Virus record (IMG/VR): IMGVR_UViG_3300048927_000250
Coordinates: 151,419-215,418 of that record
Strand: one strand, 5' to 3'
Length of the DNA: 64,000 nucleotides
Shown here one piece after another: positions 1 through 54,190 of this stretch. How positions within the stretch are numbered: the stretch's first letter is position 1; each line of letters begins with the position of its first letter. The position numbers were made by a program, and so were the translations under genes. The notes beneath the pieces were generated by a model. It did not search any database. It was not told the DNA's origin and saw nothing but the letters and a program-made list of their open reading frames with translations.

Positions 1-441
1 GGGTACGCGTATTTTCAGAACCTGTCACCGGTGTTGAATTTGGCGGACAGTAACTACGAGTTGACAATAGAGTTAGCGTTGGTGGGTAGTGGATTCATGT
101 GCACGTTCGCTACGGGTGACTACCCGGCTGCCAACAACATCAAGAAAGGACTGGAGTTACTGCACAACCAACTCAGTCAGCCTATTCAGGTCTTCCAGAC
201 CACGGACGCGGGAGCGTTTCAACGCACTTACGGTTATGGTAGTGCCAATAACCAAATGTTGAAGCTCACGGTAAAAGAGGACAGTACGAACATTACCGTC
301 TCCAACAATCAAAACAGTAACCAGGCTGTTGCTGCCAGATTCCGGACTGGGGGTGATTCGTACCTGATGTTGGGGACGTCTCACGGACTGGCTAACCGTT
401 TCACGGGATACTTGAAGTCTCTACGGGTTGTCAAACTGTAA
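1..441 (+). CDS. C-terminal part of a beta-rich protein, possibly virion or tail-fibre associated; 5' end lies outside the window
   Basis: Frame is open from base 1 (GYAYFQNLSPVLNL...) to TAA at 439-441; strand-rich N/S/T/G composition; followed by a terminator. Product class is a guess. Confidence 0.45.
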   Translation, partial: GYAYFQNLSPVLNLADSNYELTIELALVGSGFMCTFATGDYPAANNIKKGLELLHNQLSQPIQVFQTTDAGAFQRTYGYGSANNQMLKLTVKEDSTNITVSNNQNSNQAVAARFRTGGDSYLMLGTSHGLANRFTGYLKSLRVVKL

Positions 442-486: not shown

Positions 487-945
487 TCCATCCACCTCGT
501 AAGGGTGGTGGACATCAATCTCTAAGTCAGTGGGGCCTAGAATGCGCTGTATCATCGGATAAACCTCCCAATGTTTCAGCCACCCATTTCCACACCCGGG
601 CATCGTCATCGCGATATCGAAGAGCCCACGCTGGTCATACGTGTCTCTGAGCTTAATCAGTCCCTGTTCAACCCACTCCATCTTAGACGGGGCTTTCCAG
701 TCTACTTTAGTGGGGAACAACAGGATGATTTTTCCGTCGGGCATCCGCTCGCTGTACAACATGCCAATCTTGAACATCCCGGCGCGGCACCACTTACGGT
801 ACTTTTCGTAGAGGGCAGGATAGTTATCACGGCAATCCTTCGCAATCCCCGCACCCATCGCCCCAACGCAGTTCACCGTTATCATGATGCACTCTTTATC
901 AGTGTCCCAGATGTTCTGGTTCTTGAGCTTCCTGATGATTGCCAC
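481..945 (-). CDS. Macrodomain protein (DarG/Appr-1-p-like ADP-ribosylhydrolase)
   Basis: Motifs TVNCVGAMGAGIAK, LFPTK..W and IAMTMPGCGNG match the DarG-type macrodomain. Confidence 0.85.
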   Translation of the reverse strand: MAIIRKLKNQNIWDTDKECIMITVNCVGAMGAGIAKDCRDNYPALYEKYRKWCRAGMFKIGMLYSERMPDGKIILLFPTKVDWKAPSKMEWVEQGLIKLRDTYDQRGLFDIAMTMPGCGNGWLKHWEVYPMIQRILGPTDLEIDVHHPYEVDGE

Positions 946-1270
946 TTTCTGATTTCTCCTTTATTTTTTCTACTAATCGCGTAATGGCATCGCCGCATTG
1001 GAAGATGACGTTGGTAAGATGACTGTGGTGCCCCAGTTTGTGGTGAATGGCTGTAACAAAATAGGGAAATTGTTCTTCGGTCGGGAACCAGCCGACGAAC
1101 TGGTTCCACCCGATTCGAGCGACGTTGTCCTGGAGTAAATGTACTGCCACCATTGACTCAACGAGGTACCCCACTGTAATGAAATTGGAACCGGGTGAGA
1201 CCTCATTCACTGAGACGAGATGTAACCCTTTCTCCTGACATTGGTAGTTATCAAAAACTTTAGGTTCCAT
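899..1270 (-). CDS. Hypothetical protein
   Basis: 123 aa ORF with GGAG SD upstream, co-oriented with neighbours. Confidence 0.65.
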   Translation of the reverse strand: MEPKVFDNYQCQEKGLHLVSVNEVSPGSNFITVGYLVESMVAVHLLQDNVARIGWNQFVGWFPTEEQFPYFVTAIHHKLGHHSHLTNVIFQCGDAITRLVEKIKEKSESGNHQEAQEPEHLGH

Positions 1271-1290
1271 GAGCTGTCTCCTACGAAAGA

Positions 1291-1322
1291 AAAAATAAGT
1301 AGGGGCAAAACGCCCCTACTTT
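1291..1322 (-). terminator. Intrinsic terminator
   Basis: AGTAGGGGC...GCCCCTACT hairpin with an A-tract on its left (U-tract on the minus strand). Confidence 0.75.
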
Positions 1323-5535: not shown

Positions 5536-7074
5536 TTACTCCTCTTCATCGGAATAGTCGTCGTCGCTGTCGTCTTCGGAGTCGTCGTCTTCACTGGACT
5601 CTTCTTCCGTTTCAACCACGCTATCCTCAGGAACGATGTCGTCTTCTTCCTCTTCAGCTTCTTCTTCCGGGTCAATGGGTACTGCCACCGGTTGAGCCAC
5701 ATCAGGCGGAATCCCTAAACGGTCCACGTCGAAGTACGCAAACTGAGCGCCTGCGCAATACATCGTGTTGTTCAGGTAACTCAATGCCAGGGAATTCCCG
5801 ACCGGAATCTCTTCACGGTCCACAACACGCTCAATGTCAGTTGGGCGGTCTGTGTTCATGATGTTACTGAAGATTTGATACAAGGCTTTCGGGTTGTTCG
5901 GACGGTCTACCTGGTCGGCCATATACTCGCCACCCAGAATACCTGCCTGGTTACGTACCTCGGCCTCACCCATCAGACGGATTGCCTGATAACGCCACGG
6001 GAGTGCATGGCGGTCTTTCTGCGACATCTTCGCCGGAACCCCATGAACCTGGCGACGCGGTGCATCGACGGCGGACCAGTCGTGACCCGTTTTCTCCAGG
6101 ACAATCATGTAGTTAGCACCGATACGAATCTTGCTGCGTGTACGACGGAGGTCACCCTTCTCGTTGTAGAACGTTACCGGACCGTAATCTGACGGGAACC
6201 GGTCTTCGATGTCACCTACGCCTTCCACCCCGATGTTCTGAGTGTGGGACGGTAAGTAAATGTACATCATGTCTTCAACGACCGAGTTCACATGACGCTT
6301 CACGCGGCGAATGTCGTTACCCATCCCGTTGAACTCAATCAACTTATCGTAGAACGGTTTGGACAACACTTCGTAGAACGACATCAGCAGTTTGTACGCT
6401 TCCCGATAGCCATCGTCAGAACTGTCACGTTTAATCATTTCACGGACGCGTTCTTCCATGCGCATACACTGGAAGTTGTAATACTGCTCGAACACTTTCG
6501 GCGGGTTCATACGGTTGATGGAGACAACTGGAGCAGACAACACTTCAGCTACCACGCCGTATTGGTCCATCGGCATTTGTTCGCGCTTCAGCACTTTACA
6601 AATAACCCCTTTGTCACCCCAGCACCCGGTTGCTTTGAACCCGATGGTTGGTACGACGTCGTAGGTGTATTTGATGACGATACGGCAGGTGTTCAGCTGC
6701 TGGCCGTTGTAGTTAGGGACCAGCTTCAGGCGACCCAGTCCTGGCATCTCACTGGTGGCACCCGCAGAGTCACGAATCAGACGCGAGAACTTCTTAGAGA
6801 ACTTCGGCGTCTTGTTGACCTTACGGTTGTCACGGATGATTTTATCGTAGGCGTCCAGGATACGCTTGTGATACTGACGACGGGCGTTATCGAAACGCGT
6901 TACGTCATCGGTTGGCGTCATCCCTTGTTCTTCCGGCGTCGGCTGCTGTTCCAGCGGGTCGTTTTCCGGTTTCCAGACTTCCACGTCAATCACACGAGCA
7001 TTGCGGGTGTGCGCCTCAATGTAGACGAATTCATCGAAGAAGTAATCGAGTTGCATAATATATTTAGGTGACAA
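5536..7074 (-). CDS. nvRNAP beta subunit (phiKZ gp71-73-like), portion downstream of the in-frame TAG
   Basis: GFKATGCWGDKGVICKV, YMIVLEK and RLMGEAEVR match RpoB conserved regions; begins TTG directly after TAG in the same frame as 7075-7833; very acidic C-tail. Confidence 0.85.
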   Translation of the reverse strand: MSPKYIMQLDYFFDEFVYIEAHTRNARVIDVEVWKPENDPLEQQPTPEEQGMTPTDDVTRFDNARRQYHKRILDAYDKIIRDNRKVNKTPKFSKKFSRLIRDSAGATSEMPGLGRLKLVPNYNGQQLNTCRIVIKYTYDVVPTIGFKATGCWGDKGVICKVLKREQMPMDQYGVVAEVLSAPVVSINRMNPPKVFEQYYNFQCMRMEERVREMIKRDSSDDGYREAYKLLMSFYEVLSKPFYDKLIEFNGMGNDIRRVKRHVNSVVEDMMYIYLPSHTQNIGVEGVGDIEDRFPSDYGPVTFYNEKGDLRRTRSKIRIGANYMIVLEKTGHDWSAVDAPRRQVHGVPAKMSQKDRHALPWRYQAIRLMGEAEVRNQAGILGGEYMADQVDRPNNPKALYQIFSNIMNTDRPTDIERVVDREEIPVGNSLALSYLNNTMYCAGAQFAYFDVDRLGIPPDVAQPVAVPIDPEEEAEEEEDDIVPEDSVVETEEESSEDDDSEDDSDDDYSDEEE

Positions 7075-29635: not shown

Positions 29636-30604
29636 TTACGAAGAGAATTTAAAGCCGTCGTCGTTCAGACCAGCGGTATCCAGCACGTCAACGCTCTCAC
29701 GTTGTTTACGGGCACGGGCCAGCGCTTCGAAGTTGTCCACGGTCTTTTGCAGGCCTGCAATCACACCCGCCAGGTCCTGGGTATAGATGATGAAGTGCAG
29801 GTCGTTCTTTTCAGCTACGCGGCGATACCCTTCACAACCGTATTCAGACGGCAGAGATGGGTTGGCACCGTCCACTGAACCGTGCAGGCTGGCAACCGCC
29901 AGTGGGTATGGCAGCGACTTCGCATGGCTGTAGTCTGGGGTGATGTCCAGTAGCGCAACGCCTGGGCCGTTTTTCACGTTGAAGAAACGGTGTACGTCAG
30001 AGCTGTCGAGACGGTCGTGTTCGCCAGAGTACAGGTCAAGGATAGACAGCAAGCCCAGAACCATCTGTGCATCAACGTCGTTGTCCTGTGCCACAGAACC
30101 GTTATCTTCGTAGAAGACGACCGCAGTGGATTCGTTCTTCTTCGCGATACCGTTCAGGGTCTGCCAGGTATCCATGGTGTTTTTGGTGGTCTGGGAGTTT
30201 TCCGCAGAACCTACCACAAAGAACACGGTTGGTTTTTTCTGGCGCAGCAGTTCTTCAGCCAGTTTCGGTCCAATAACAGAACCGGAACCGCCACCGCCTG
30301 AGAACACCAGAATGTTCAGGTCACCGGCAGGGTGGCTGACCAGCACGTCTGGGATGGCGCGGGCGATGGGGTGATAGTTGGTACTGCGCTCTTTGCCAGA
30401 ACCGTCGGTTGCACCCGGGATGATATAACAGTCTTCATCACGGAAGTTGGAACCGCCGATGGCGCTAAAGTTTGAACGAGAGGTATCGACGAAGTGGGCT
30501 TTCACTTCGGCCAGACCCGCGAGGTTTTTCTTCATCAGCAGGCTGACAATGTTGATACCAGTGCCGCCACAGCCATAGATGGAAACGGTGTTACGTGAGC
30601 TCAT
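29636..30604 (-). CDS. phuZ: Tubulin-like spindle protein PhuZ
   Basis: GCGGTGIN and SGGGGSGS tubulin/FtsZ signature motifs; 322 aa. Confidence 0.95.
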   Translation of the reverse strand: MSSRNTVSIYGCGGTGINIVSLLMKKNLAGLAEVKAHFVDTSRSNFSAIGGSNFRDEDCYIIPGATDGSGKERSTNYHPIARAIPDVLVSHPAGDLNILVFSGGGGSGSVIGPKLAEELLRQKKPTVFFVVGSAENSQTTKNTMDTWQTLNGIAKKNESTAVVFYEDNGSVAQDNDVDAQMVLGLLSILDLYSGEHDRLDSSDVHRFFNVKNGPGVALLDITPDYSHAKSLPYPLAVASLHGSVDGANPSLPSEYGCEGYRRVAEKNDLHFIIYTQDLAGVIAGLQKTVDNFEALARARKQRESVDVLDTAGLNDDGFKFSS

Positions 30605-44183: not shown

Positions 44184-44479
44184 GGCTTCTCCCACCCTTT
44201 GTCATTACGGCGTGTGATTACCCAGGTTAAGACTTTCATTGCCCAAGCGTGAAGTTCATCCAGGGTAGCGTCCCCAGAAGTTTCCGTCACTACCTTGCTC
44301 ACGAGTACCAATGCGTCTTCGTAGTTCTGTGGAGCAAACTCTACGTAACTTCCGCGTAAGACGAAGGTGTTCTCGGGAATGTTGCGATGCGTCAGGTATT
44401 GCGTTTCACCTTTAGCCATATCGCGTACTGAGTGGGGTACAATGATAGGAACAACGATTCCGTAATTAGCGTGTAACAT
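44180..44479 (-). CDS. Hypothetical protein
   Basis: 99 aa, AGGAG SD. Confidence 0.6.
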   Translation of the reverse strand: MLHANYGIVVPIIVPHSVRDMAKGETQYLTHRNIPENTFVLRGSYVEFAPQNYEDALVLVSKVVTETSGDATLDELHAWAMKVLTWVITRRNDKGWEKP

Positions 44480-44529
44480 GACTCTCTCCTGAATAAGGTT
44501 TTTTATTGAATGGTTAATTTAATTAGTTT

Positions 44530-44775
44530 GAAATTTTTCGAGTGATTGGTCTCTCACTCTGAAAGAAGGATAGAGTACTAGCGTACTCACTCAGTACCCT
44601 CTAATGATTACTCGTATTCACTCGCAATCATACGGGTACTAGTTAACAGCACAAAAGCCCCTACGGGCCTTTTGGCTGGAAGTTCAAAACAATGCACCCC
44701 ACCGTAAAAAATAACCGTTATACGACGGAATACCTATCGAAACACCCCTTTTCAGAGATGTTCGATAAATATAAT
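44530..44775. other. AT-rich, hairpin-dense non-coding region (candidate ncRNA, leader or origin)
   Basis: Six inverted repeats in about 230 nt, no long ORF. Confidence 0.4.
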
Positions 44776-44800
44776 AAGTCAGAGTGACCAAATCGTGAAA

Positions 44801-45448
44801 TTACTGTTCGAGGACTGGAGGCTCCGGTGAAGCACTTGGTTCGATGTACTTCAACGTGATGTCAATCATGCGACGGAACTCTGTCCACGTGACTGCCTGA
44901 TGAAGAATCCCGTCCATCAGTTTGTGGATGTAGTAATCGTCGAACTCACCAGCGTCGATGTACTTGGCGATGGATTCTCCCAGTACCCGTTGAGCACTCT
45001 CCACCCGCACCAGGTCAATTAGCGTCTTAATACGGGTAGTGATGTACGACAGGTTAATCAGTAACTGGAATAGCGGTTGGTCATCGACATCACTTTCCTG
45101 CTTGTTGATGGCTTCCCAGATTAACTTTACGCCCCTGTCGACTAACACCTTCACAGCAGGGAGTGTAACCATCTGTCCTCGTTCGAGCTCCTGTTCAACC
45201 AAGTCACGAAGCATGGCGATACGGTCCTGTGCAAACTCCTGCTCGTCCGCCAGTTCTTTGTAGCACGCTGCGGTCTTACTGTAGAAATCTTCCAGGATTG
45301 CACGAATGCGTTCAGGCGGAACAACCATCTCGTTCATCGCCTCCTCATCACCCTGCCACACTACCCCTACGCCAACCAGCATCCAACGTAGGCGGTCGTT
45401 GAAGCGACGTTTCGCATCGTCGCTAAACTCGTAATAACTTCTGTCCAT
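44801..45448 (-). CDS. Hypothetical helical protein
   Basis: 215 aa, AGGAG SD. Confidence 0.7.
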   Translation of the reverse strand: MDRSYYEFSDDAKRRFNDRLRWMLVGVGVVWQGDEEAMNEMVVPPERIRAILEDFYSKTAACYKELADEQEFAQDRIAMLRDLVEQELERGQMVTLPAVKVLVDRGVKLIWEAINKQESDVDDQPLFQLLINLSYITTRIKTLIDLVRVESAQRVLGESIAKYIDAGEFDDYYIHKLMDGILHQAVTWTEFRRMIDITLKYIEPSASPEPPVLEQ

Positions 45449-45477
45449 ATACGCTCCTGTAAAGCGCTGTAGGCGTT

Positions 45478-45510
45478 TAAAAAAGAAAAGGTGGGGGTTT
45501 CCCCACCTTT
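45478..45510 (-). terminator. Intrinsic terminator
   Basis: AAAGGTGGGG-GTTT-CCCCACCTTT with an A-tract on the plus strand. Confidence 0.8.
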
Positions 45511-45517
45511 GATGTTG

Positions 45518-46552
45518 TTACGGGTGAATCTTTTCCCAGAGCTCCTGGTGAGCTTTGATTTCGAGGTGGTTAAGGTACTGTAACGTTCCTTTACGCACCC
45601 CTTGGTAAATATTCACGTAATCGAAGTCGTAATACGCTTCCAGCAGAATGGTGACTGAAGGAGATTTTTCCTGAATCGCCTTGTGTTTACGGTAGACGCC
45701 ACGCACGTGCTGGAAGAAAGCATCACGTACACCGTCCAGGGTTTCCTTCAGGCTGCACGCGAACAGCTGGTACAACGCCACATGTACATCACGCCATGGA
45801 GTCAGGTCACCGTGACCGATGGCTGTCAGACAGAAGCGGCGAGCATCGTCGTATTTGAGCGCCATGGCCACATGACCAACCTTCTCCTGCTCTGTCCAGA
45901 ACCAGTCCGGGGTTTCGGTCTGCGCATGTTCGAAGAACGCCACCACGAGTTCAGGCGCATCGCCGGAATACTGGATGTGGTCAACTGCCAAACTTTTACG
46001 CAGGTCTTTTACTTTATGGACGGCTTCGTTGAAGAGACCTAACCACGGACTGAGCCCATTGGTCTTACCGGGTTCCGATGATGCGAAGACCGGCAGTTCC
46101 AGGTCGGCGAGGAAAGAGCGTAACGCCAGAATTTCCATCAGCAGCGGACGCTCAGGGATACCTTCTACACCGTGGTCACCCAGGTAGTAGTTTGCCTCCA
46201 CCTTCACGCTCATGTGCGAGACTGTGTAAAAGCTGATGTCGCTATCGTCACCCAGCGTCAGCACCCCGTCTTTGTTGATGAGCTGTAGCGTACCGTACCC
46301 ACCGTCTAACTCTAGGTACAACGTGAAGTCTTTGTTGAGGTCCGCTTTCGCCATGTCCTCATCAGACAGTGGGAAGTCGATGCTTTCGTTGACCTTCCAG
46401 TCCAGGGAGATAGTATCGACGGTAATCTTCTGAAGCTGGTCGAGAGAGTGATAACCCTTCTCGGAGATTTCGCGACGCCACTCACAGCGGTCGTCAACGA
46501 AGGTCAGGTAAATTTCTTGTACGTCTTTGTTGGTTGCGAAAAGTGAAGTCAT
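45518..46552 (-). CDS. Hypothetical protein
   Basis: 344 aa; beta-rich N-half, helical C-half. Confidence 0.7.
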   Translation of the reverse strand: MTSLFATNKDVQEIYLTFVDDRCEWRREISEKGYHSLDQLQKITVDTISLDWKVNESIDFPLSDEDMAKADLNKDFTLYLELDGGYGTLQLINKDGVLTLGDDSDISFYTVSHMSVKVEANYYLGDHGVEGIPERPLLMEILALRSFLADLELPVFASSEPGKTNGLSPWLGLFNEAVHKVKDLRKSLAVDHIQYSGDAPELVVAFFEHAQTETPDWFWTEQEKVGHVAMALKYDDARRFCLTAIGHGDLTPWRDVHVALYQLFACSLKETLDGVRDAFFQHVRGVYRKHKAIQEKSPSVTILLEAYYDFDYVNIYQGVRKGTLQYLNHLEIKAHQELWEKIHP

Positions 46553-47133
46553 TTGGTTTCCTCCTGAGGAATGATTTGTTCGACACGAACGATTTTAATG
46601 GTTTCTTTGGCGAAGACTCGCCACTCAGTCGTGTACATGGATGCAGCATTGCCGCCGTACGCCGCCCCGTCAAACCCTGCTGCGATTAATTTAGTAACCT
46701 CTTCAGGGTCGTCGTAGAACGGGTAGGCTTGGAAGTAGAGTTCCTCCAGTCGGTCCGGGTAACGGTCCAACCATTGGTCAATCGTGTGGTTCGGGTACTG
46801 CGCAAATTCCGATACGGTCATGTCCTCCCAGAGGTTGGTGTCGACAATCCACTCTTTGAACTTGCGGGCAATACGTAGGGCTTCGGTACGCCCGAGTTTA
46901 GCTTCAACCTCACCTAACTCCAGGAAGGGGTCAGTCGGGGTATTCTGGAAAAAGTTCTTGCAGTCGAGAGTAGCGACGACAATGCGTGGGTTCTCGACCT
47001 GTCCCAACGCATCCAGTGGATGGATGGCGTAGTAGTGAGCGGTGGGTCGATGGTTACTGAAGGTCCATGACGCCAACCGCTTATCTAAGACGTCTCCCGC
47101 ACCGTAAATGCCGCGAAAGAATTCTGTAGTCAT
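46549..47133 (-). CDS. Putative ADP-ribosyltransferase-fold protein (ART-PolyVal-like)
   Basis: FRG (R7), TFS...TAHYYA (S26), AGFDG, EWRVF (E170) in canonical ART order. Confidence 0.55.
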   Translation of the reverse strand: MTTEFFRGIYGAGDVLDKRLASWTFSNHRPTAHYYAIHPLDALGQVENPRIVVATLDCKNFFQNTPTDPFLELGEVEAKLGRTEALRIARKFKEWIVDTNLWEDMTVSEFAQYPNHTIDQWLDRYPDRLEELYFQAYPFYDDPEEVTKLIAAGFDGAAYGGNAASMYTTEWRVFAKETIKIVRVEQIIPQEETK

Positions 47134-47789
47134 TGTGCTTTCAGACTCCCGCCTGTTTTGCTGGCCCCGGCCTGCACTTGTTGTTCTTTACGCAGGTAAA
47201 CCATTTCGAGGTTGAAATGATAAACCGCATTGTTCAGAATCGCCCGTAACCCAGTCAGGGTTTTGGCGCTGTTAATTTGGTCAGTCAGGTAATCGCGATG
47301 ATGCGGGTCGAATTCCTGGAACGCAACTTCTTGCCCCAGACGTTTGTGGATGTCGTGCACCACTGCATTCAACGCGTACTTTTCTTGCACTTCTTTGTAG
47401 TGCACTTCGTAGATATCGCGGACCGCATCGAGCAAAGCCTTCAGGCGGTCAGACCCGCCCACGATGAACAGTTGGTGTTCCACATCGCGCACGAACTCAG
47501 AGATGAAATCCACCATCTGACTTTCAACCGCCAGAAAGTCAGGGAGTATGATGTCTCGCCAGCTCTGACTGTTTTTCAGCATCCCTTCTAACCAGACTTG
47601 TTCCGAACGCTCAGTCTCGGCAACCAGTCCCGGAAGCCGCGCTGCGAGATTGGATTGGAGGCTAGCAACCATCGGTTTGTTCAGTGCGGTTGTTTTTGCC
47701 CGTTCAGTCAGGTTCAACAGGTCCTGCATGATGGCAGCTGCCATCTGAACGTAAATAAGTTTCTTCTTGTTGTCGAAGTTGTTGTACAT
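47130..47789 (-). CDS. Hypothetical helical protein
   Basis: AGGAG SD before ATG 47789. Confidence 0.7.
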   Translation of the reverse strand: MYNNFDNKKKLIYVQMAAAIMQDLLNLTERAKTTALNKPMVASLQSNLAARLPGLVAETERSEQVWLEGMLKNSQSWRDIILPDFLAVESQMVDFISEFVRDVEHQLFIVGGSDRLKALLDAVRDIYEVHYKEVQEKYALNAVVHDIHKRLGQEVAFQEFDPHHRDYLTDQINSAKTLTGLRAILNNAVYHFNLEMVYLRKEQQVQAGASKTGGSLKAQ

Positions 47790-47820
47790 TACTTTTTTCT
47801 CCTGAATAAAAGAATACACT

Positions 47821-47842
47821 CCAGGTCCCCGAAGGAACCTGG
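47821..47842 (-). terminator. Hairpin with C(UUCG)G loop
   Basis: Minus strand CCAGGTTCC-TTCG-GGGACCTGG. Confidence 0.6.
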
Positions 47843-47869
47843 AGGCATAAGGTTTATGTCCGTCGTAAA

Positions 47870-48271
47870 TTATGACTTACGATTCTGGTGAGCAGCGATA
47901 CCGTTGACAATGCGTTTCAACGCGTCGACCGTGTCGTTCCACTTGCGGTACAATTCGCTGGCGTGACCGAATTCAGGGAACGCATTGATTTCGATTTCCA
48001 TCGCGCGCATCACACCTTTGAAGTCATGGTGGTCGAACATAGATGGCCAGACAGCCCCGATGTGGGATTTGACGGTCTGGTACTGCATCCCAGCTTTGGA
48101 AGCTTTCATTTCCCCAACGGTTGGGAGACGCACTTTATCCAAATAGTCAGTAAGCTCGGACAAAGGTGCTTCGGTTTGCTTATTCAAAAGCTTGATAAGT
48201 TTTTCTTTATGCTCATCATCGAGTTCTTCGATTAGACCCACGATGATATTGTATATTTTTTCTTGTTTCAT
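47870..48271 (-). CDS. Hypothetical protein (paralogue of 48307-48702)
   Basis: 133 aa; aligns by eye with the upstream gene. Confidence 0.7.
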   Translation of the reverse strand: MKQEKIYNIIVGLIEELDDEHKEKLIKLLNKQTEAPLSELTDYLDKVRLPTVGEMKASKAGMQYQTVKSHIGAVWPSMFDHHDFKGVMRAMEIEINAFPEFGHASELYRKWNDTVDALKRIVNGIAAHQNRKS

Positions 48272-48306
48272 GTTTACTCCGATAGGGGTCCATGGACCCC
48301 GGGTTA

Positions 48307-48702
48307 TTAGTTAGTGTTTTGTTTACGTAAGCAGCGGCCAGCCTGAACTATCTTGATGAGATGTCCGATGTAGCTGTTCCATTGCTTTGAGTAGTAGTGC
48401 TGACTGCGGTACCACGGATAACGTTCAGGTAGCCAGTCCATGAACTTCGTAATGGCCTCTCTGAATTCAAAGTCTTCAAAGAGTGGGATGTGCGTCATCT
48501 TGAAGAGTCCGATAGACACCTTTAAGAAGTTCTTCTTCACATCGTTCATGGACATCGGTTCCGATGAAAGATGTTGACGCAAGAAACCAATGACTTCTTG
48601 CTGCGGGTCAAAGGTCCCTTGAATCGCAAGAATGATTTCTTTGCGTTCTTCGATACTGTACAAACTGAGTGCTTCAATTACCTCTTTATATTTTTCCGTC
48701 AT
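48307..48702 (-). CDS. Hypothetical protein (paralogue of 47870-48271)
   Basis: GGAGGT SD before ATG 48702. Confidence 0.7.
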   Translation of the reverse strand: MTEKYKEVIEALSLYSIEERKEIILAIQGTFDPQQEVIGFLRQHLSSEPMSMNDVKKNFLKVSIGLFKMTHIPLFEDFEFREAITKFMDWLPERYPWYRSQHYYSKQWNSYIGHLIKIVQAGRCLRKQNTN

Positions 48703-48768
48703 AAATACCTCCAATGGTGTTACGGATTATTGTTGTAGTGGAAGGCATAAGTACACCTTCTCATGCTG

Positions 48769-48776
48769 ATAATATA
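48769..48776 (-). promoter_or_regulatory. Early-type promoter variant TATATTAT
   Basis: GGTCTATATTA context identical to the 36610 promoter. Confidence 0.6.
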
Positions 48777-48802
48777 GACCTTTCCTCACTTTAAAACGGG
48801 TT

Positions 48803-50023
48803 GTGAATATGGCCATTCGTGACGTTTTCTTGCGCCTCTCCCGCGTCCAGAGCTTCGACAAGAAGTTCGCCAATCGGGTGAAAGCGTTTTACAATGGGTT
48901 CATTAACAAGAACCCTGAGCATTCCGGCTTCTTCGGTTCCGGTTTGTTAGCCGTACACCGCCTGCGTTGGACAGACCAGGAAACCGGGAACTGGTTCGAT
49001 GACATCCTGGAAGGTGACCGCGATGAAATCCAGGAAGCCCTCTGGGAACTGGATAGCGTCGACCGAAACCACATCGTGGCCTCTGACGCCCTGAACCTCA
49101 GTGTGATTTATCTGGTCCACCGGACACTGACCAGCAAAGCGCTGAACGCCAAAGAACAACATGAGTGCGCGGTACACCTCATCAGTATCCTGCACTTCAA
49201 GTACATCTCCAGTATCCTCACCAACTACTTCCAGTATCAGTCTGACCCGCAGATTGCACTGCGCACGTACGAGGCGATGAACTTCAAGTTTGACCTGAAG
49301 GTCCTGAAGACGTGGGGTAACCTGATTCACGCCCGCGCTGAAAGTATCATTGCCAAATCCGGTATCCACTACAAAACCTTCATCGCCTTTGCCGACGACG
49401 AAGATATCCAGTATGCGGTCACCGACCCACAGACCCGTATCCGTGTGGTGATTAAGAAACTCACTGCGCTGTATTACGAAGTCCGGGCCGATGATGGGCG
49501 TGTTGCTTCCGTCTCCAGTATGGTAGAAGTGGACGGGGAACTGGAAGTGCGTGACATGACGCGTACCCTCAGTACGTACAGTCGATACCTGAAGGAAATC
49601 ATCGTTGACGGCCCGTCCTTTGTTCGCCTTGAACTGGTGAACACCGTAGCAGGGATGAACCCGTCCATGACCCCCAGTGCGTTCGTGCAAACCTTGAACT
49701 GGGTGTCGGCGAACTACCAGGCTAACCCAAAAGCCAAGTTACCGGAGTTCGTGGATAAGGTCCTGGAGTTTGCGTTTGACCTGATTAAGGAGAAGGGGAT
49801 TGATTCCCGAAACCTGGTTGCGGTCTCCGAAGTCCTGAAGGGGATTATCAACGCCTCCCGTAACAAAGAGAAAGACGTCCTGTACCTGCGTAACGAAGGC
49901 GACAAGATTGTTCGGACTGCGACTGGACGTAAGAGCCCAACGCCTGTATCCGGGGAACGTACCGGGTTGATTCTGTACTTGGTCCTTAGGGCGATGACGG
50001 TGAACTACTTCAAGAAACGCTAA
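48803..50023 (+). CDS. Conserved helical protein, probably virion or core gene
   Basis: 406 aa (ATG 48809 is an alternative start); lone plus-strand gene with terminator. Confidence 0.75.
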   Translation: MNMAIRDVFLRLSRVQSFDKKFANRVKAFYNGFINKNPEHSGFFGSGLLAVHRLRWTDQETGNWFDDILEGDRDEIQEALWELDSVDRNHIVASDALNLSVIYLVHRTLTSKALNAKEQHECAVHLISILHFKYISSILTNYFQYQSDPQIALRTYEAMNFKFDLKVLKTWGNLIHARAESIIAKSGIHYKTFIAFADDEDIQYAVTDPQTRIRVVIKKLTALYYEVRADDGRVASVSSMVEVDGELEVRDMTRTLSTYSRYLKEIIVDGPSFVRLELVNTVAGMNPSMTPSAFVQTLNWVSANYQANPKAKLPEFVDKVLEFAFDLIKEKGIDSRNLVAVSEVLKGIINASRNKEKDVLYLRNEGDKIVRTATGRKSPTPVSGERTGLILYLVLRAMTVNYFKKR

Positions 50024-52072: not shown

Positions 52073-54190
52073 TTATCGGTAACGACTGTACGAATCCCGA
52101 CGACGAGAACTGTTGAGCTCTTCGATGAGGGACGAGACGTTGATGTTCTGCACACCCATGCCCTGCAACTCGCCTTCCAGGTAACGAAGCTGTGCCTCGT
52201 ACTTGGTGATGAGTACCGGGTTACTGGTATCGCGCAACACCTGAATCGTTTCTTCCAGCGCATCGTTAAGTTCGTCCAGCTGATAGTTCATCTGGCGTTC
52301 TTCTTTCGACAACCCATCTTCTTCAATGGCTTTCGCCAATACTTTCTTCCGGTCAAGTCCGTAGTAACCGAGGTTACGTCCGTAGACCAGGAACCACACA
52401 GGAAGGAGCCAAGCGATGACGGTATCATCGTGGCCATCGCGACTGTGGTCCACACGCCCGTTCTTATCTTCCAGTCCACTGATTTCCGCAATCAGCTGTT
52501 TATCGTGAACACGACTTGCACCTTTACGCGCAGCAATCTTCAGGATTTCGTTGTACAGCGTCTTACGGGTAGTGGTGCCGGTACAGAACCCGAACTTGGT
52601 TTTACGTCGCACGTAGAAACTGTCATCACGGGTATTCAGCGGACGACGGATTTCCATGTACGCATCAGGGTTGACCTCGTGGTCCTGTACGATGCTGTTG
52701 TAGATACGCGCAAACGGGTCAATGCCTTCGGCGTGAAGTCGGATACACAGGTAGTCGATGAACGTCTGACCGGTGGACTTACGCTCTGGAATCAACACCG
52801 ACGTTGGGTAGCGCATCATGAACTCGAACAAGAAATCGGCGTAACGTGGAATCAAGGCCTCGTTCACCACCGACACACCCAACACCGACAGGTCGGTATA
52901 GTCTTCGATGACCAGCGACAGCGCATCTCGACCACCGCCTTCCGAGGTATCCGAACCCACCACCGCAGGTAGGGTCAGACGGCGTGCTTCCAGTTCATCA
53001 CGGGTAAGGTACCAGTGAATGATGAACCCGCCCGGTAAGGTCTCTGAGTATTCGGAGTAACGTTGAGAACCGTTGATGCGTCCCAGCAGTTCTTTGTCCA
53101 GTGGGTTCTTCAACCCGCCTACGGTCCAGATGTTGAAGTAGTCACGGTCAGCGTCCCCACCTTCCGCGGCGTTCTTCGCCATGTTCTCGTAGTGCTGTTT
53201 GTCCGATACACCCACTTGCAGATGTGACCAGGTGCCGTTGATAAGAATCTTACGGCCCTTACAGTGCCGCTTCACGGTCTCACGCAGGTCGTCTTCGTCC
53301 TTGCAATCGTACAAGGTGTCAGACCAGCGCATGGCTTCTGCCCACAGCTTGTAGATGAACGCACCGTCACGGTCATCCTGCTTACCGGCCGTTGTGGTGA
53401 TGATGGAACCGTATGGGAGCCCCTTTTTCTTCGCTTCCTGAATTACGGCATCACCGGACGCCATACATGCGGAGTAGGCAATCTTGATGTTTGCGATGTA
53501 GGGGGCTTCGTCCCAGATGTTCGTTGGTGTGGTGTTACCACGACCAACACGGTATGCACCGTTTTCGTCCGCACGGGATACGGCAATGGCGTAGCGGTTG
53601 TTACGAGACTTGTAAGTGACCATCTCATTGCTGAGGGAGTCGTTACGGTCTTGGACCACCAGGTATTGCGGCAGATACTCTTTAATGCGACGTAAACGAC
53701 CGGCGTTCTCTGCACGCAGTTCGTCGGACTTTGTAACCAGACCGATACGGGCGTTACGGTACTTGATGTACAAGAGCCAGGAGGACAGGGCATCCGAGGA
53801 GATGGACTTACCGGTCTGTCGTGGCTGAATTAACAGGTAGTCGATATGGTTACAGTACGACCAGATGAGCGACATGTTCGCTCGGTTGGCACGGAACTGG
53901 TTACCACCTTCGCCGACTGCCGGTGGAATCAGTAGGCATTCCCGTAGGTAATACCAAACGTTGTTGTAGCACTCGTTCTTAATCGCCAACTTCTCTTCGA
54001 ACGTCAGCTTTGGGGAGAACGGGTCCAGTCCCTGAATTTCGGGGTTAAGTAAAGAGATAGGCCAGAGGCAGTTCTTTACACCGGCTTCATGGTACAACTT
54101 CGATGCGAAATCCATGAAGTAACCGTTATTGGTTTTCTTATCCGGAATCGCACTGGGGAACCTTTCCCAGTCCTTCATGAACAGAATCAT
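52073..54190 (-). CDS. terL: Terminase large subunit (phiKZ gp25-like)
   Basis: Walker A QPRQTGKS, Walker B IWDEAP, nuclease acidic motifs GSDTSEG and HDDTVIAW. Confidence 0.92.
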   Translation of the reverse strand: MILFMKDWERFPSAIPDKKTNNGYFMDFASKLYHEAGVKNCLWPISLLNPEIQGLDPFSPKLTFEEKLAIKNECYNNVWYYLRECLLIPPAVGEGGNQFRANRANMSLIWSYCNHIDYLLIQPRQTGKSISSDALSSWLLYIKYRNARIGLVTKSDELRAENAGRLRRIKEYLPQYLVVQDRNDSLSNEMVTYKSRNNRYAIAVSRADENGAYRVGRGNTTPTNIWDEAPYIANIKIAYSACMASGDAVIQEAKKKGLPYGSIITTTAGKQDDRDGAFIYKLWAEAMRWSDTLYDCKDEDDLRETVKRHCKGRKILINGTWSHLQVGVSDKQHYENMAKNAAEGGDADRDYFNIWTVGGLKNPLDKELLGRINGSQRYSEYSETLPGGFIIHWYLTRDELEARRLTLPAVVGSDTSEGGGRDALSLVIEDYTDLSVLGVSVVNEALIPRYADFLFEFMMRYPTSVLIPERKSTGQTFIDYLCIRLHAEGIDPFARIYNSIVQDHEVNPDAYMEIRRPLNTRDDSFYVRRKTKFGFCTGTTTRKTLYNEILKIAARKGASRVHDKQLIAEISGLEDKNGRVDHSRDGHDDTVIAWLLPVWFLVYGRNLGYYGLDRKKVLAKAIEEDGLSKEERQMNYQLDELNDALEETIQVLRDTSNPVLITKYEAQLRYLEGELQGMGVQNINVSSLIEELNSSRRRDSYSRYR

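Follow-up and report, generated by a model that had tools for sequence, protein, structure and literature searches.

A stand-alone protein of a PhiEaH1-like jumbo phage probably belongs to a divergent, R-type branch of the ART-PolyVal ADP-ribosyltransferase family

The gene and its conservation

The DNA analysed here is a 64,000-nucleotide stretch of the IMG/VR virus record IMGVR_UViG_3300048927_000250 (hereafter the window), the last 64 kb of this 215,418-bp record, and our subject is a minus-strand gene in it that encodes a 194-amino-acid (aa) protein. The original prediction, made from the sequence letters, had proposed this protein as an unannotated ADP-ribosyltransferase (ART) of the R-S-E type, named for its presumed active-site residues. 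The open reading frame (ORF) lies where it had been placed, with the stop codon taken into its end coordinate, and the five motifs singled out are found at the expected residues, namely FFRG at 5 (R7), WTFSNHRPTAHYYA at 23 (S26), VVATLDCKN at 52, LIAAGFDG at 149 and EWRVF at 170 (E170). As set out below, the protein shares homology with the ART-PolyVal domains found in polyvalent proteins of phages, has a predicted ART fold and probably acts as an enzyme that puts a chemical tag on a host molecule. Coordinates of all features are collected in Table 1.

The window shows about 96% identity to Erwinia phage PhiEaH1 (Iapetusvirus); over bases 46000-48000 the figure is 96.6%, and vB_Ea277G reaches 96.3% there. 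The ART gene differs from that of PhiEaH1 by 13 synonymous nucleotide differences and one amino-acid change and from that of vB_Ea277G by 17 synonymous differences and two amino-acid changes, and a near-identical strain present in public runs carries four silent changes together with the same D98N; the gene is under purifying selection. In a scan against PHROGs the protein matched PHROG 8642, a family of unknown function, with an E-value of 7e-62. Given this match, the synonymous excess and the 362 relatives described below, the gene is more than a chance ORF. The term "unannotated" applies to its function only, because the gene has already been called in relatives, where its GenBank counterparts AGX01786.1 and WBF04783.1 are both named "hypothetical protein".

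Table 1 Features of the window, with positions counted from its first letter (canonical, H-type ART-PolyVal domains)
Feature	Position	Strand	Remarks
ART-fold gene, 194 aa	46549..47133	minus	coding sequence 46552-47133 plus stop; ATG start
Codon R7, strand 1 (FFRG)	47113..47115	minus	invariant (115/115); paired by hhalign with the canonical His of YHGT
Codons T24-F25-S26, strand 2	47056..47064	minus	at the place of S-T-S (R-S-E enzymes) and Y-F-T (canonical ART-PolyVal)
Codon Y35, AxxYA helix after strand 2	47029..47031	minus	invariant; AxxYA common to canonical ART-PolyVal
Helical insert, residues 73-140	46714..46917	minus	AlphaFold2 helices 73-131; hhalign gap against canonical domains
Codon D155, G-F-D-G	46669..46671	minus	invariant; paired by hhalign with the Asp of canonical GYDG (66/67)
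Codon E170, start of penultimate strand (EWRVF)	46624..46626	minus	invariant (115/115); no conserved canonical counterpart
Upstream ORF, 229 aa from GTG start (219 aa as annotated in vB_Ea277G)	47130..47819	minus	stop overlaps the ART start by 4 nt
Downstream ORF, 344 aa	45518..46552	minus	start overlaps the ART stop by 4 nt
Terminator-like hairpin, 11 pairs	47819..47844	minus	directly upstream of the trio; consensus scan only
Terminator-like hairpin, 10 pairs plus T-run	45487..45510	minus	directly after the 344-aa ORF; consensus scan only
Macrodomain-like ORF, 154 aa	481..945	minus	proposed eraser; 45.6 kb from the ART gene
RNA-polymerase beta-like ORF	5536-7074 (like region about 6475-6852)	minus	Pfam RNA_pol_Rpb2_6, 25.2 bits
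Tubulin/PhuZ-like ORF	29636-30604 (like region about 30116-30580)	minus	Pfam Tubulin, 33.4 bits
Large terminase subunit (PhiEaH1 annotation)	52073-54190	minus	some 5 kb away from the ART unit, with orphan genes in between

A divergent branch of the ART-PolyVal family

A word-index protein search returned only seven close relatives of the 194-aa protein, and an exhaustive search returned 362 at E<=1e-3 and 280 at E<=1e-10. We collected 157 relatives, 87 of which are at most 300 aa long, 20 between 301 and 1000 aa and 50 longer than 1000 aa (maximum 5812 aa); in the long relatives (1000-5800 aa) the match is a single internal domain. These long proteins also carry LPD1, 22, 23, 37, 38, MuF_C, GNAT, GGDEF and Zeta_toxin domains, which are markers of polyvalent proteins. 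The sub-family is thus found within multidomain proteins of the polyvalent type, the 194-aa protein itself being stand-alone. In an alignment of the latter with 114 domain pieces (115 sequences, alignment A1), residues R7, G8, F25, Y35, D155 and E170 are invariant.

Two lines of evidence bear out the proposed homology to ART-PolyVal domains. When scanned singly, 76 of the 115 domain pieces matched Pfam ART-PolyVal (PF18760) at E<=0.01, and a comparison by hhalign of the protein family with 67 canonical (H-type) ART-PolyVal domains, taken out of the collected relatives for this purpose, gave a probability of 99.4% and an E-value of 7e-22 over 135 columns. When ten sequences were scanned again (nine relatives from the sub-family plus the homologue in Klebsiella phage Eowyn), four of them yielded end-to-end PF18760 matches at 37.8-50.1 bits (curated Pfam cut-off 31.2 bits), spanning positions 3-140 of 140. 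In several long relatives the best match to the Pfam model is a separate domain adjoining the R-type one. The relative P0009, for instance, has canonical domains at 439-580 and an R-type domain at 236-414, Tunturi_5 gp225 has them at 203-384 and 529-715, respectively, and a 2387-aa protein of Dolichospermum phage Dfl-JY45 combines four canonical copies with an R-type domain at 1244-1427.

The published active site of polyvalent-protein ARTs is H-Y-D, with H on strand 1, Y on strand 2 and D on strand 5 (PMC5512222). The canonical domains follow the consensus P-L-V-V-Y-H-G-T ... G-F-Y-F-T ... A-x-x-Y-A ... P-V-Y-L-S-I-x-N-P ... G-Y-D-G ... V-A-F-x-P-x-Q-I-K-S-A, with the His in 62 and the Asp in 66 of the 67. 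Only the Asp of this site is kept in the 194-aa protein (D155, in the G-x-D-G motif), and it is invariant throughout the R-type domains. On strand 1, the His is replaced by Arg in 115 of 115 R-type sequences (R7), and on strand 2 the Tyr is replaced by Ser or Thr in 107 of 115 (T24). Before the last strand, where H-type domains are variable, all 115 R-type sequences have a Glu (E170), and in mid-domain they contain a helical insert of about 65 residues (73-140 in the 194-aa protein), whereas H-type domains are without it.

Both types share the motifs P-L-x-V-Y-x-G, x-F-x, AxxYA, P-V/A-x-L-x-I-x-N-P, G-[FY]-D-G and F-x-x-x-Q-[IV], and the homology of the 194-aa protein to PF18760, as seen by hhalign, covers the whole domain. 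Like ART-PolyVal, the R-type sub-family sits within giant polyvalent proteins, sometimes beside canonical copies. Unlike ART-PolyVal, the 194-aa protein stands alone, has the insert of about 65 residues and the additional invariant E170, and goes undetected by the Pfam model; a PF18760 match was sought in the protein at E<=10 and in the whole phage genome at E<=1, and none was found. Judged from these sequence comparisons, the domain appears to be a switched-triad offshoot of the H-Y-D polyvalent ART family. Neither a second copy of the domain nor a canonical ART-PolyVal was found in the 215-kb phage genome. Among the 157 collected proteins a second sizeable R-type copy occurs in only one (P0045), and one to 13 H-type copies are also present in 19 of the 64 collected proteins of at least 400 aa. 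The rarity of a second R-type copy and the joint carriage of H-type domains suggest that the two types are not redundant.

Two of the proteins that carry both types, Tunturi_5 gp225 (L002:1396-5184) and the 2387-aa protein of Dfl-JY45 (L010:254-7417), combine one R-type with one to four H-type domains. The gene for gp225 lies directly before the portal gene, and its product also contains a domain resembling nucleoside 2-deoxyribosyltransferases; Pfam at E<=1 did not bear out the "MutT/NUDIX" label of the protein.

Predicted structure and fold neighbours

An AlphaFold2 model computed from alignment A1 has a mean predicted local distance difference test score (pLDDT) of 93.8 and a predicted template-modelling score (pTM) of 0.88. 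Its strands comprise residues 5-9, 23-26, 50-56, 61-65, 156-160, 169-173 and 179-186, with a helix at 29-37 after strand 2 and a helical block at 73-131. The model displays the split beta-sheet core and the strand-helix-loop-strand-helix NAD+ cradle of the ART superfamily, and it matches almost only ART folds. A Foldseek search of the PDB placed chain B of 9k3a, from cyanophage A4's pre-ejectosome, on top (E 4.8e-6), followed by AcrIF11 (6kyf), MbcT, PARP4, ParT, PARP2 and diphtheria toxin; cholera and pertussis toxins reached E-values of about 0.7-1.7 and template-modelling (TM) scores of about 0.2 only. A Foldseek-independent structure search over 48,161 representatives gave scores of 9.7 for 9k3a_B residues 1420-1610, 7.9 for MbcT, 7.6 for ParT, 7.4 for diphtheria toxin, 7.3 for tankyrase, and 7.1 each for PARP1 and Xre-RES. 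Among the predicted viral structures of BFVD, members of the protein's own family ranked first (Eowyn, TM 0.88; Moabite, 0.81), and further neighbours include many proteins named "ART-PolyVal-like" or "PolyVal ADP-ribosyltransferase" as well as an N4-like vRNAP protein. Neighbours in the ESM Atlas are labelled ART-PolyVal, RES, Phage_Mu_F+ART-PolyVal and AcrIF11_ADP_ribosyl. Structure prediction, which had been suggested as a check of the fold, thus came out ART-like with AlphaFold2, Foldseek, BFVD and the ESM Atlas alike.

Sequence searches of the PDB with the 194-aa protein were less informative. A single-sequence search came back blank, and the matches of a profile search (a spike-derived construct and haemagglutinin HA2) were spurious and were dismissed as coiled-coil noise against the helical insert.

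The closest solved structure to the 194-aa protein is the domain at residues 1420-1610 of 9K3A chain B (PMC12002296), which forms part of a larger protein, probably gp27, whose numbering runs past residue 1600, and is not found by sequence search with the 194-aa protein. The A4 ejection protein is packed inside the capsid, and the main text of the paper that describes it does not mention ADP-ribosylation (PMC12002296). As the match is to a capsid-packed ejection protein, it supports the idea that embedded ART copies are delivered with the DNA; for the stand-alone copy it has no direct bearing.

Among experimentally understood proteins, the nearest analogue appears to be AcrIF11 (PDB 6KYF, 8DWQ), a mono-ART of phages and plasmids that acts as an anti-CRISPR by ADP-ribosylating Csy1/Cas8f. 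The likeness lies in the fold only. The active site of AcrIF11 consists of H/Y plus D/E, that of the 194-aa protein of R/T plus E, and a sequence match to AcrIF11 (PF26151) was not obtained in the Pfam scan of the protein. AcrIF11 has a variable helical region at the place equivalent to the 73-140 insert (bioRxiv 10.1101/2024.08.26.609590). By this analogy, anti-CRISPR activity would be just one possibility for the 194-aa protein.

Active-site residues

The choice of R7 and E170 as active-site residues holds up, as both are invariant and appear to occupy the canonical strand-1 and catalytic-acid positions. Residues 2..192 of the model align with PARP1 857..1010, Tankyrase-1 1179..1314, diphtheria toxin 15..173 and MbcT 22..178. 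We take these ranges to put H862 and E988 of PARP1 at about residues 7 and 170, H1184 and E1291 of Tankyrase-1 likewise at about 7 and 170, and H21 of diphtheria toxin and R27 of MbcT at about 7. The ranges obtained for AcrIF11 in the Foldseek-independent search (Pae1 1..132, Pae2 14..167) would put D115/E116 of Pae1 at about 168-170, H20 of Pae2 at about 7 and D146/E147 of Pae2 at about 166; for AcrIF11, H20 and D146/E147 (D115) have been validated by mutation (bioRxiv 10.1101/2024.08.26.609590). The serine S26, which had been named as the conserved hydroxyl, has to be given up in favour of its neighbour: column 26 is variable (G/S/T) and it is column 24, with S/T in 107 of the 115 sequences and T24 in the 194-aa protein, that is conserved.

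Y35 is likely to be the nicotinamide-stacking tyrosine, and from its spacing we presume that it is equivalent to Y65 of diphtheria toxin and Y907 of PARP1. At a lower weight, the spacing from F25 to Y35 is, as we assume, that from the strand-2 tyrosine to the helix tyrosine in PARPs and diphtheria toxin, and the sub-family motif E-Y-R-V-F-D-x-x-Q-V presumably resembles the catalytic strand of PARP1. Together, R7, T24 (with S26), Y35 and E170 likely form the NAD+ and catalytic set, in which E170 is the proposed catalytic Glu, and D155 appears as a second conserved acid at the preceding strand. All six invariant residues are kept in the close, Iapetusvirus-like clade (72-99% identity).

The label "R-S-E type" describes the protein correctly as far as the residue pattern (R7, T24, E170) goes, and the same R...S/T...E pattern is found at the three classical positions of T4 Alt/ModA/ModB and of other R-S-E ARTs (C3, iota/VIP2, cholera and pertussis toxins). 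The protein does not belong to the R-S-E clade (Alt/ModA/ModB, C3, cholera toxin); structurally it neighbours diphtheria toxin, PARPs, RES/ParT and AcrIF11. Of the R-S-E motifs, strand 2 reads T-F-S in place of S-T-S and the acid motif reads T-T-E without the first Q/E, a Glu at 168 being present in only 47 of the 115 sub-family sequences.

Enzymatic activity and possible targets

On top of the observed homology, fold, residue conservation and purifying selection, we favour, with a probability of roughly 0.6, the reading that the product of the gene is a stand-alone and catalytically competent ART-PolyVal protein from a divergent R-type branch, that is, an NAD+-dependent transferase acting on a host macromolecule. 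As to NAD+ use, the roles of the catalytic residues, target class and timing, we infer the following course. NAD+ would be bound in the strand-helix-loop-strand-helix cradle of R7-G8 (strand 1), T24-F25-S26 (strand 2) and Y35; E170, possibly with the help of D155, would activate C1'' of the ribose, and ADP-ribose would then be moved to the host macromolecule. The target would most likely be a protein, namely a component of defence, transcription or translation, whose modification favours the phage. Since it is made from a small three-gene unit and is not part of a polyvalent protein, the ART protein would act as a freely expressed effector of a phiKZ-like, probably nucleus-forming jumbo phage. 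Polyvalent proteins, the usual setting of ART-PolyVal in phages and conjugative elements, are predicted to travel inside the virion and to enter the cell by injection (Iyer et al. 2017, PMC5512222).

Several points weigh against this transferase reading. Scans of the 194-aa protein with Pfam and NCBIfam gave no match at E<=10. ART folds also cover NADases, NAD+ phosphorylases and pseudo-enzymes, and our mapping of residues onto solved ARTs combines profile alignment, alignment ranges and known motifs. No literature report of a biochemical test on any ART-PolyVal domain was found. The protein further departs from near-invariant positions of its sub-family (E9I, H10Y, N40L, P61F, H159Y, G163A, E168T, Y171W and Q178T), and these lost residues are a caveat for activity or specificity. 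Finally, transcription of the ART gene cannot be shown from four runs labelled as metatranscriptomic RNA-Seq, which contain a 99.5%-identical strain over positions 44300-49000 of the window, because the phage is present there in genome-covering contigs of 75-175 kb at flat depth; this suggests phage DNA in the libraries or mislabelling. The sample from which the window itself stems is likely a root metagenome.

The lost residues would also fit a catalytically dead pseudo-ART that serves as a structural or binding module for protein-protein or DNA contacts, as in the capsid core. The top structural match is indeed a building block of the A4 pre-ejectosome, and dead copies do exist, as exemplified by the SaP7 homologue without the R7 strand and with Val at E170. 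We nevertheless regard this explanation as very unlikely, because none of the six invariant residues (R7, Y35, D155 and E170 among them) has been lost in the 194-aa protein or its clade (72-99% identity), and the protein is small and stand-alone, without a packaging or scaffold domain. The SaP7 protein, encoded by a Salmonella phage of the SPN3US-like type (L011:3866-4393), lacks strand 1 altogether and has kept G-Y-D-G; from its sequence it is probably a degenerate, inactive copy.

A second explanation that we consider quite improbable is an NAD+-consuming hydrolase or phosphorylase (NADase, MbcT/RES-like), which would alter NAD+ or ADP-ribose pools and put no tag on a macromolecule. Pfam gave no match to the RES-domain model in the 194-aa protein, the homology is to ART-PolyVal and not to RES, a drain of NAD+ would harm a lytic phage, and the invariant Glu at the transferase position resembles that of diphtheria toxin, PARPs and AcrIF11. 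In general, diphtheria toxin and PARPs (H-Y-E) and the RES/ParT/MbcT toxins show no sequence-level match to the 194-aa protein, in which Arg replaces the strand-1 His and which, unlike them, comes without an antitoxin-type neighbour and without receptor or translocation domains.

With regard to the target class, the protein could be a nucleic-acid-directed ART that ADP-ribosylates DNA or RNA of the host or of a competitor, as DarT, Scabin/pierisin and RhsP2 do. We think this improbable, because matches of this kind rank below those to protein-modifying ARTs (diphtheria toxin, PARPs, ParT, AcrIF11), neither a nucleic-acid-binding domain nor a conserved basic patch came to light in the 194-aa protein, and the neighbouring genes form no consistent pattern.

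Going beyond the transferase reading, we offer the tentative idea, unlikely on present evidence, that R-type domains represent an enzyme with a function of its own, which arose within the H-Y-D polyvalent-protein ART family through a full triad switch (His replaced by Arg, Tyr by Ser/Thr, and a catalytic Glu acquired). If true, the two textbook configurations of the ART active site would not be strictly bound to clades, the switch might reflect specificity for a new acceptor such as a defence protein or a nucleic acid, and the stand-alone copy in a nucleus-forming jumbo phage would be a dedicated effector of anti-defence or host shutoff, possibly working with the phage macrodomain.

ART-PolyVal has been described as the commonest enzymatic domain for protein modification among the giant proteins thought to be injected by phages and plasmids (PMC5512222). 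Because the 194-aa protein is small, soluble and stand-alone and its model is of high confidence, it offers a convenient way in to what these domains modify, and its source group, the PhiEaH1-like phages of Erwinia amylovora, is culturable. An R/[ST]/E active site that grows out of an H-Y-D family bears on the evolution of ART specificity. The practical gain is modest: a testable function for the "hypothetical protein" family PHROG 8642, and a likely identity for a solved domain of the cyanophage capsid core.

The macrodomain ORF

The ART had also been proposed to form a writer/eraser pair with a macrodomain encoded elsewhere in the window; in such a pair, the ART would tag a target and the macrodomain would remove the tag or protect phage components from it. 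The ORF at 481-945 matches Pfam Macro with an E-value of 0.0027 and 15.2 bits, below the 22-bit cut-off (positions 3-110 of 118), matches PHROG 335, and is 37% identical (E 1e-31) to the Macro protein of phage Eowyn, which passes Pfam at 35 bits. What speaks for the pair is gene adjacency in this one phage lineage, as the Eowyn Macro gene lies directly upstream of the ART homologue, and the finding that macrodomains can erase the AcrIF11-made tag in lysate (bioRxiv 10.1101/2024.08.26.609590).

This linkage, the only one found, is not conserved, and in the window phage the two genes are far apart (Table 1). With two queries, no macro homologue was detected within 6 kb of the domain at 45 IMG/VR loci, a search of limited sensitivity for distant macro sub-families, and at the flanks of eight other loci the two macro queries were positive for Eowyn only. 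Pfam Macro was likewise absent among the 61 nearest neighbours at 13 stand-alone loci, which include thymidylate synthase, dihydrofolate reductase, ligase, lysozyme and helix-turn-helix proteins. Because more than half of jumbo phages (about 56%; PMC9503650) carry a Macro domain, co-occurrence of ART and Macro in one genome is expected by chance and constitutes weak evidence. Other roles have also been proposed for phage macrodomains, such as degrading ADP-ribose-derived immune signals or reversing host ARTs. Consequently, a dedicated pair seems a rather unlikely arrangement.

Gene neighbourhood and phage type

The ART gene overlaps an ORF on either side, and the two terminator-like hairpins that bracket the trio suggest that orf229, ART and orf344 form a three-gene unit. 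Neither neighbouring ORF belongs to a Pfam or PHROG family, and Atlas searches gave chance-level matches only for the 344-aa ORF and no usable match for the 229-aa ORF.

The window also encodes RNA-polymerase beta-like and tubulin-like proteins, both hallmarks of nucleus-forming jumbo phages of the phiKZ type, and PhiEaH1 has been cited as one of the nearest relatives of PCH45, a nucleus-forming phage of Serratia (bioRxiv 10.1101/782524). Because of these proteins and this kinship, the phage is probably phiKZ-like and nucleus-forming, with its own transcription machinery. This touches on the comparison with T4 Alt/Mod made in the original prediction. As a concept, a phage-encoded enzyme that modifies the host is common to both, but the analogy is weakened in so far as Alt/Mod re-program the host RNA polymerase and the window phage probably brings its own transcription machinery. 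A survey from the Aravind laboratory found ARTs most often in jumbo phages that lack a polymerase of their own (PMC7824862).

Distribution of the R-type domain

In 50,697 phage records the R-type domain was found in about 20, comprising 19 matches of full domain length and one short partial match in a 48-kb virus. All records with full-length R-type domains exceed 200 kb and belong to Iapetusvirus, Eowyn-like and Moabitevirus-like phages, the Dolichospermum phage and Tunturi_5. Of 45 R-type loci in IMG/VR, about 30 are embedded in ORFs of more than 400 aa and about 15 are stand-alone, ten of the latter being located on contigs of more than 180 kb.

One homologue, gp269 of Serratia phage Yaphecito (L003:2929-3555), has no Pfam match and is labelled "putative PLxRFG domain-containing protein". 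This label may reflect the N-terminal P-L-x-V-Y-R-G motif of the family and not a true PLxRFG domain.

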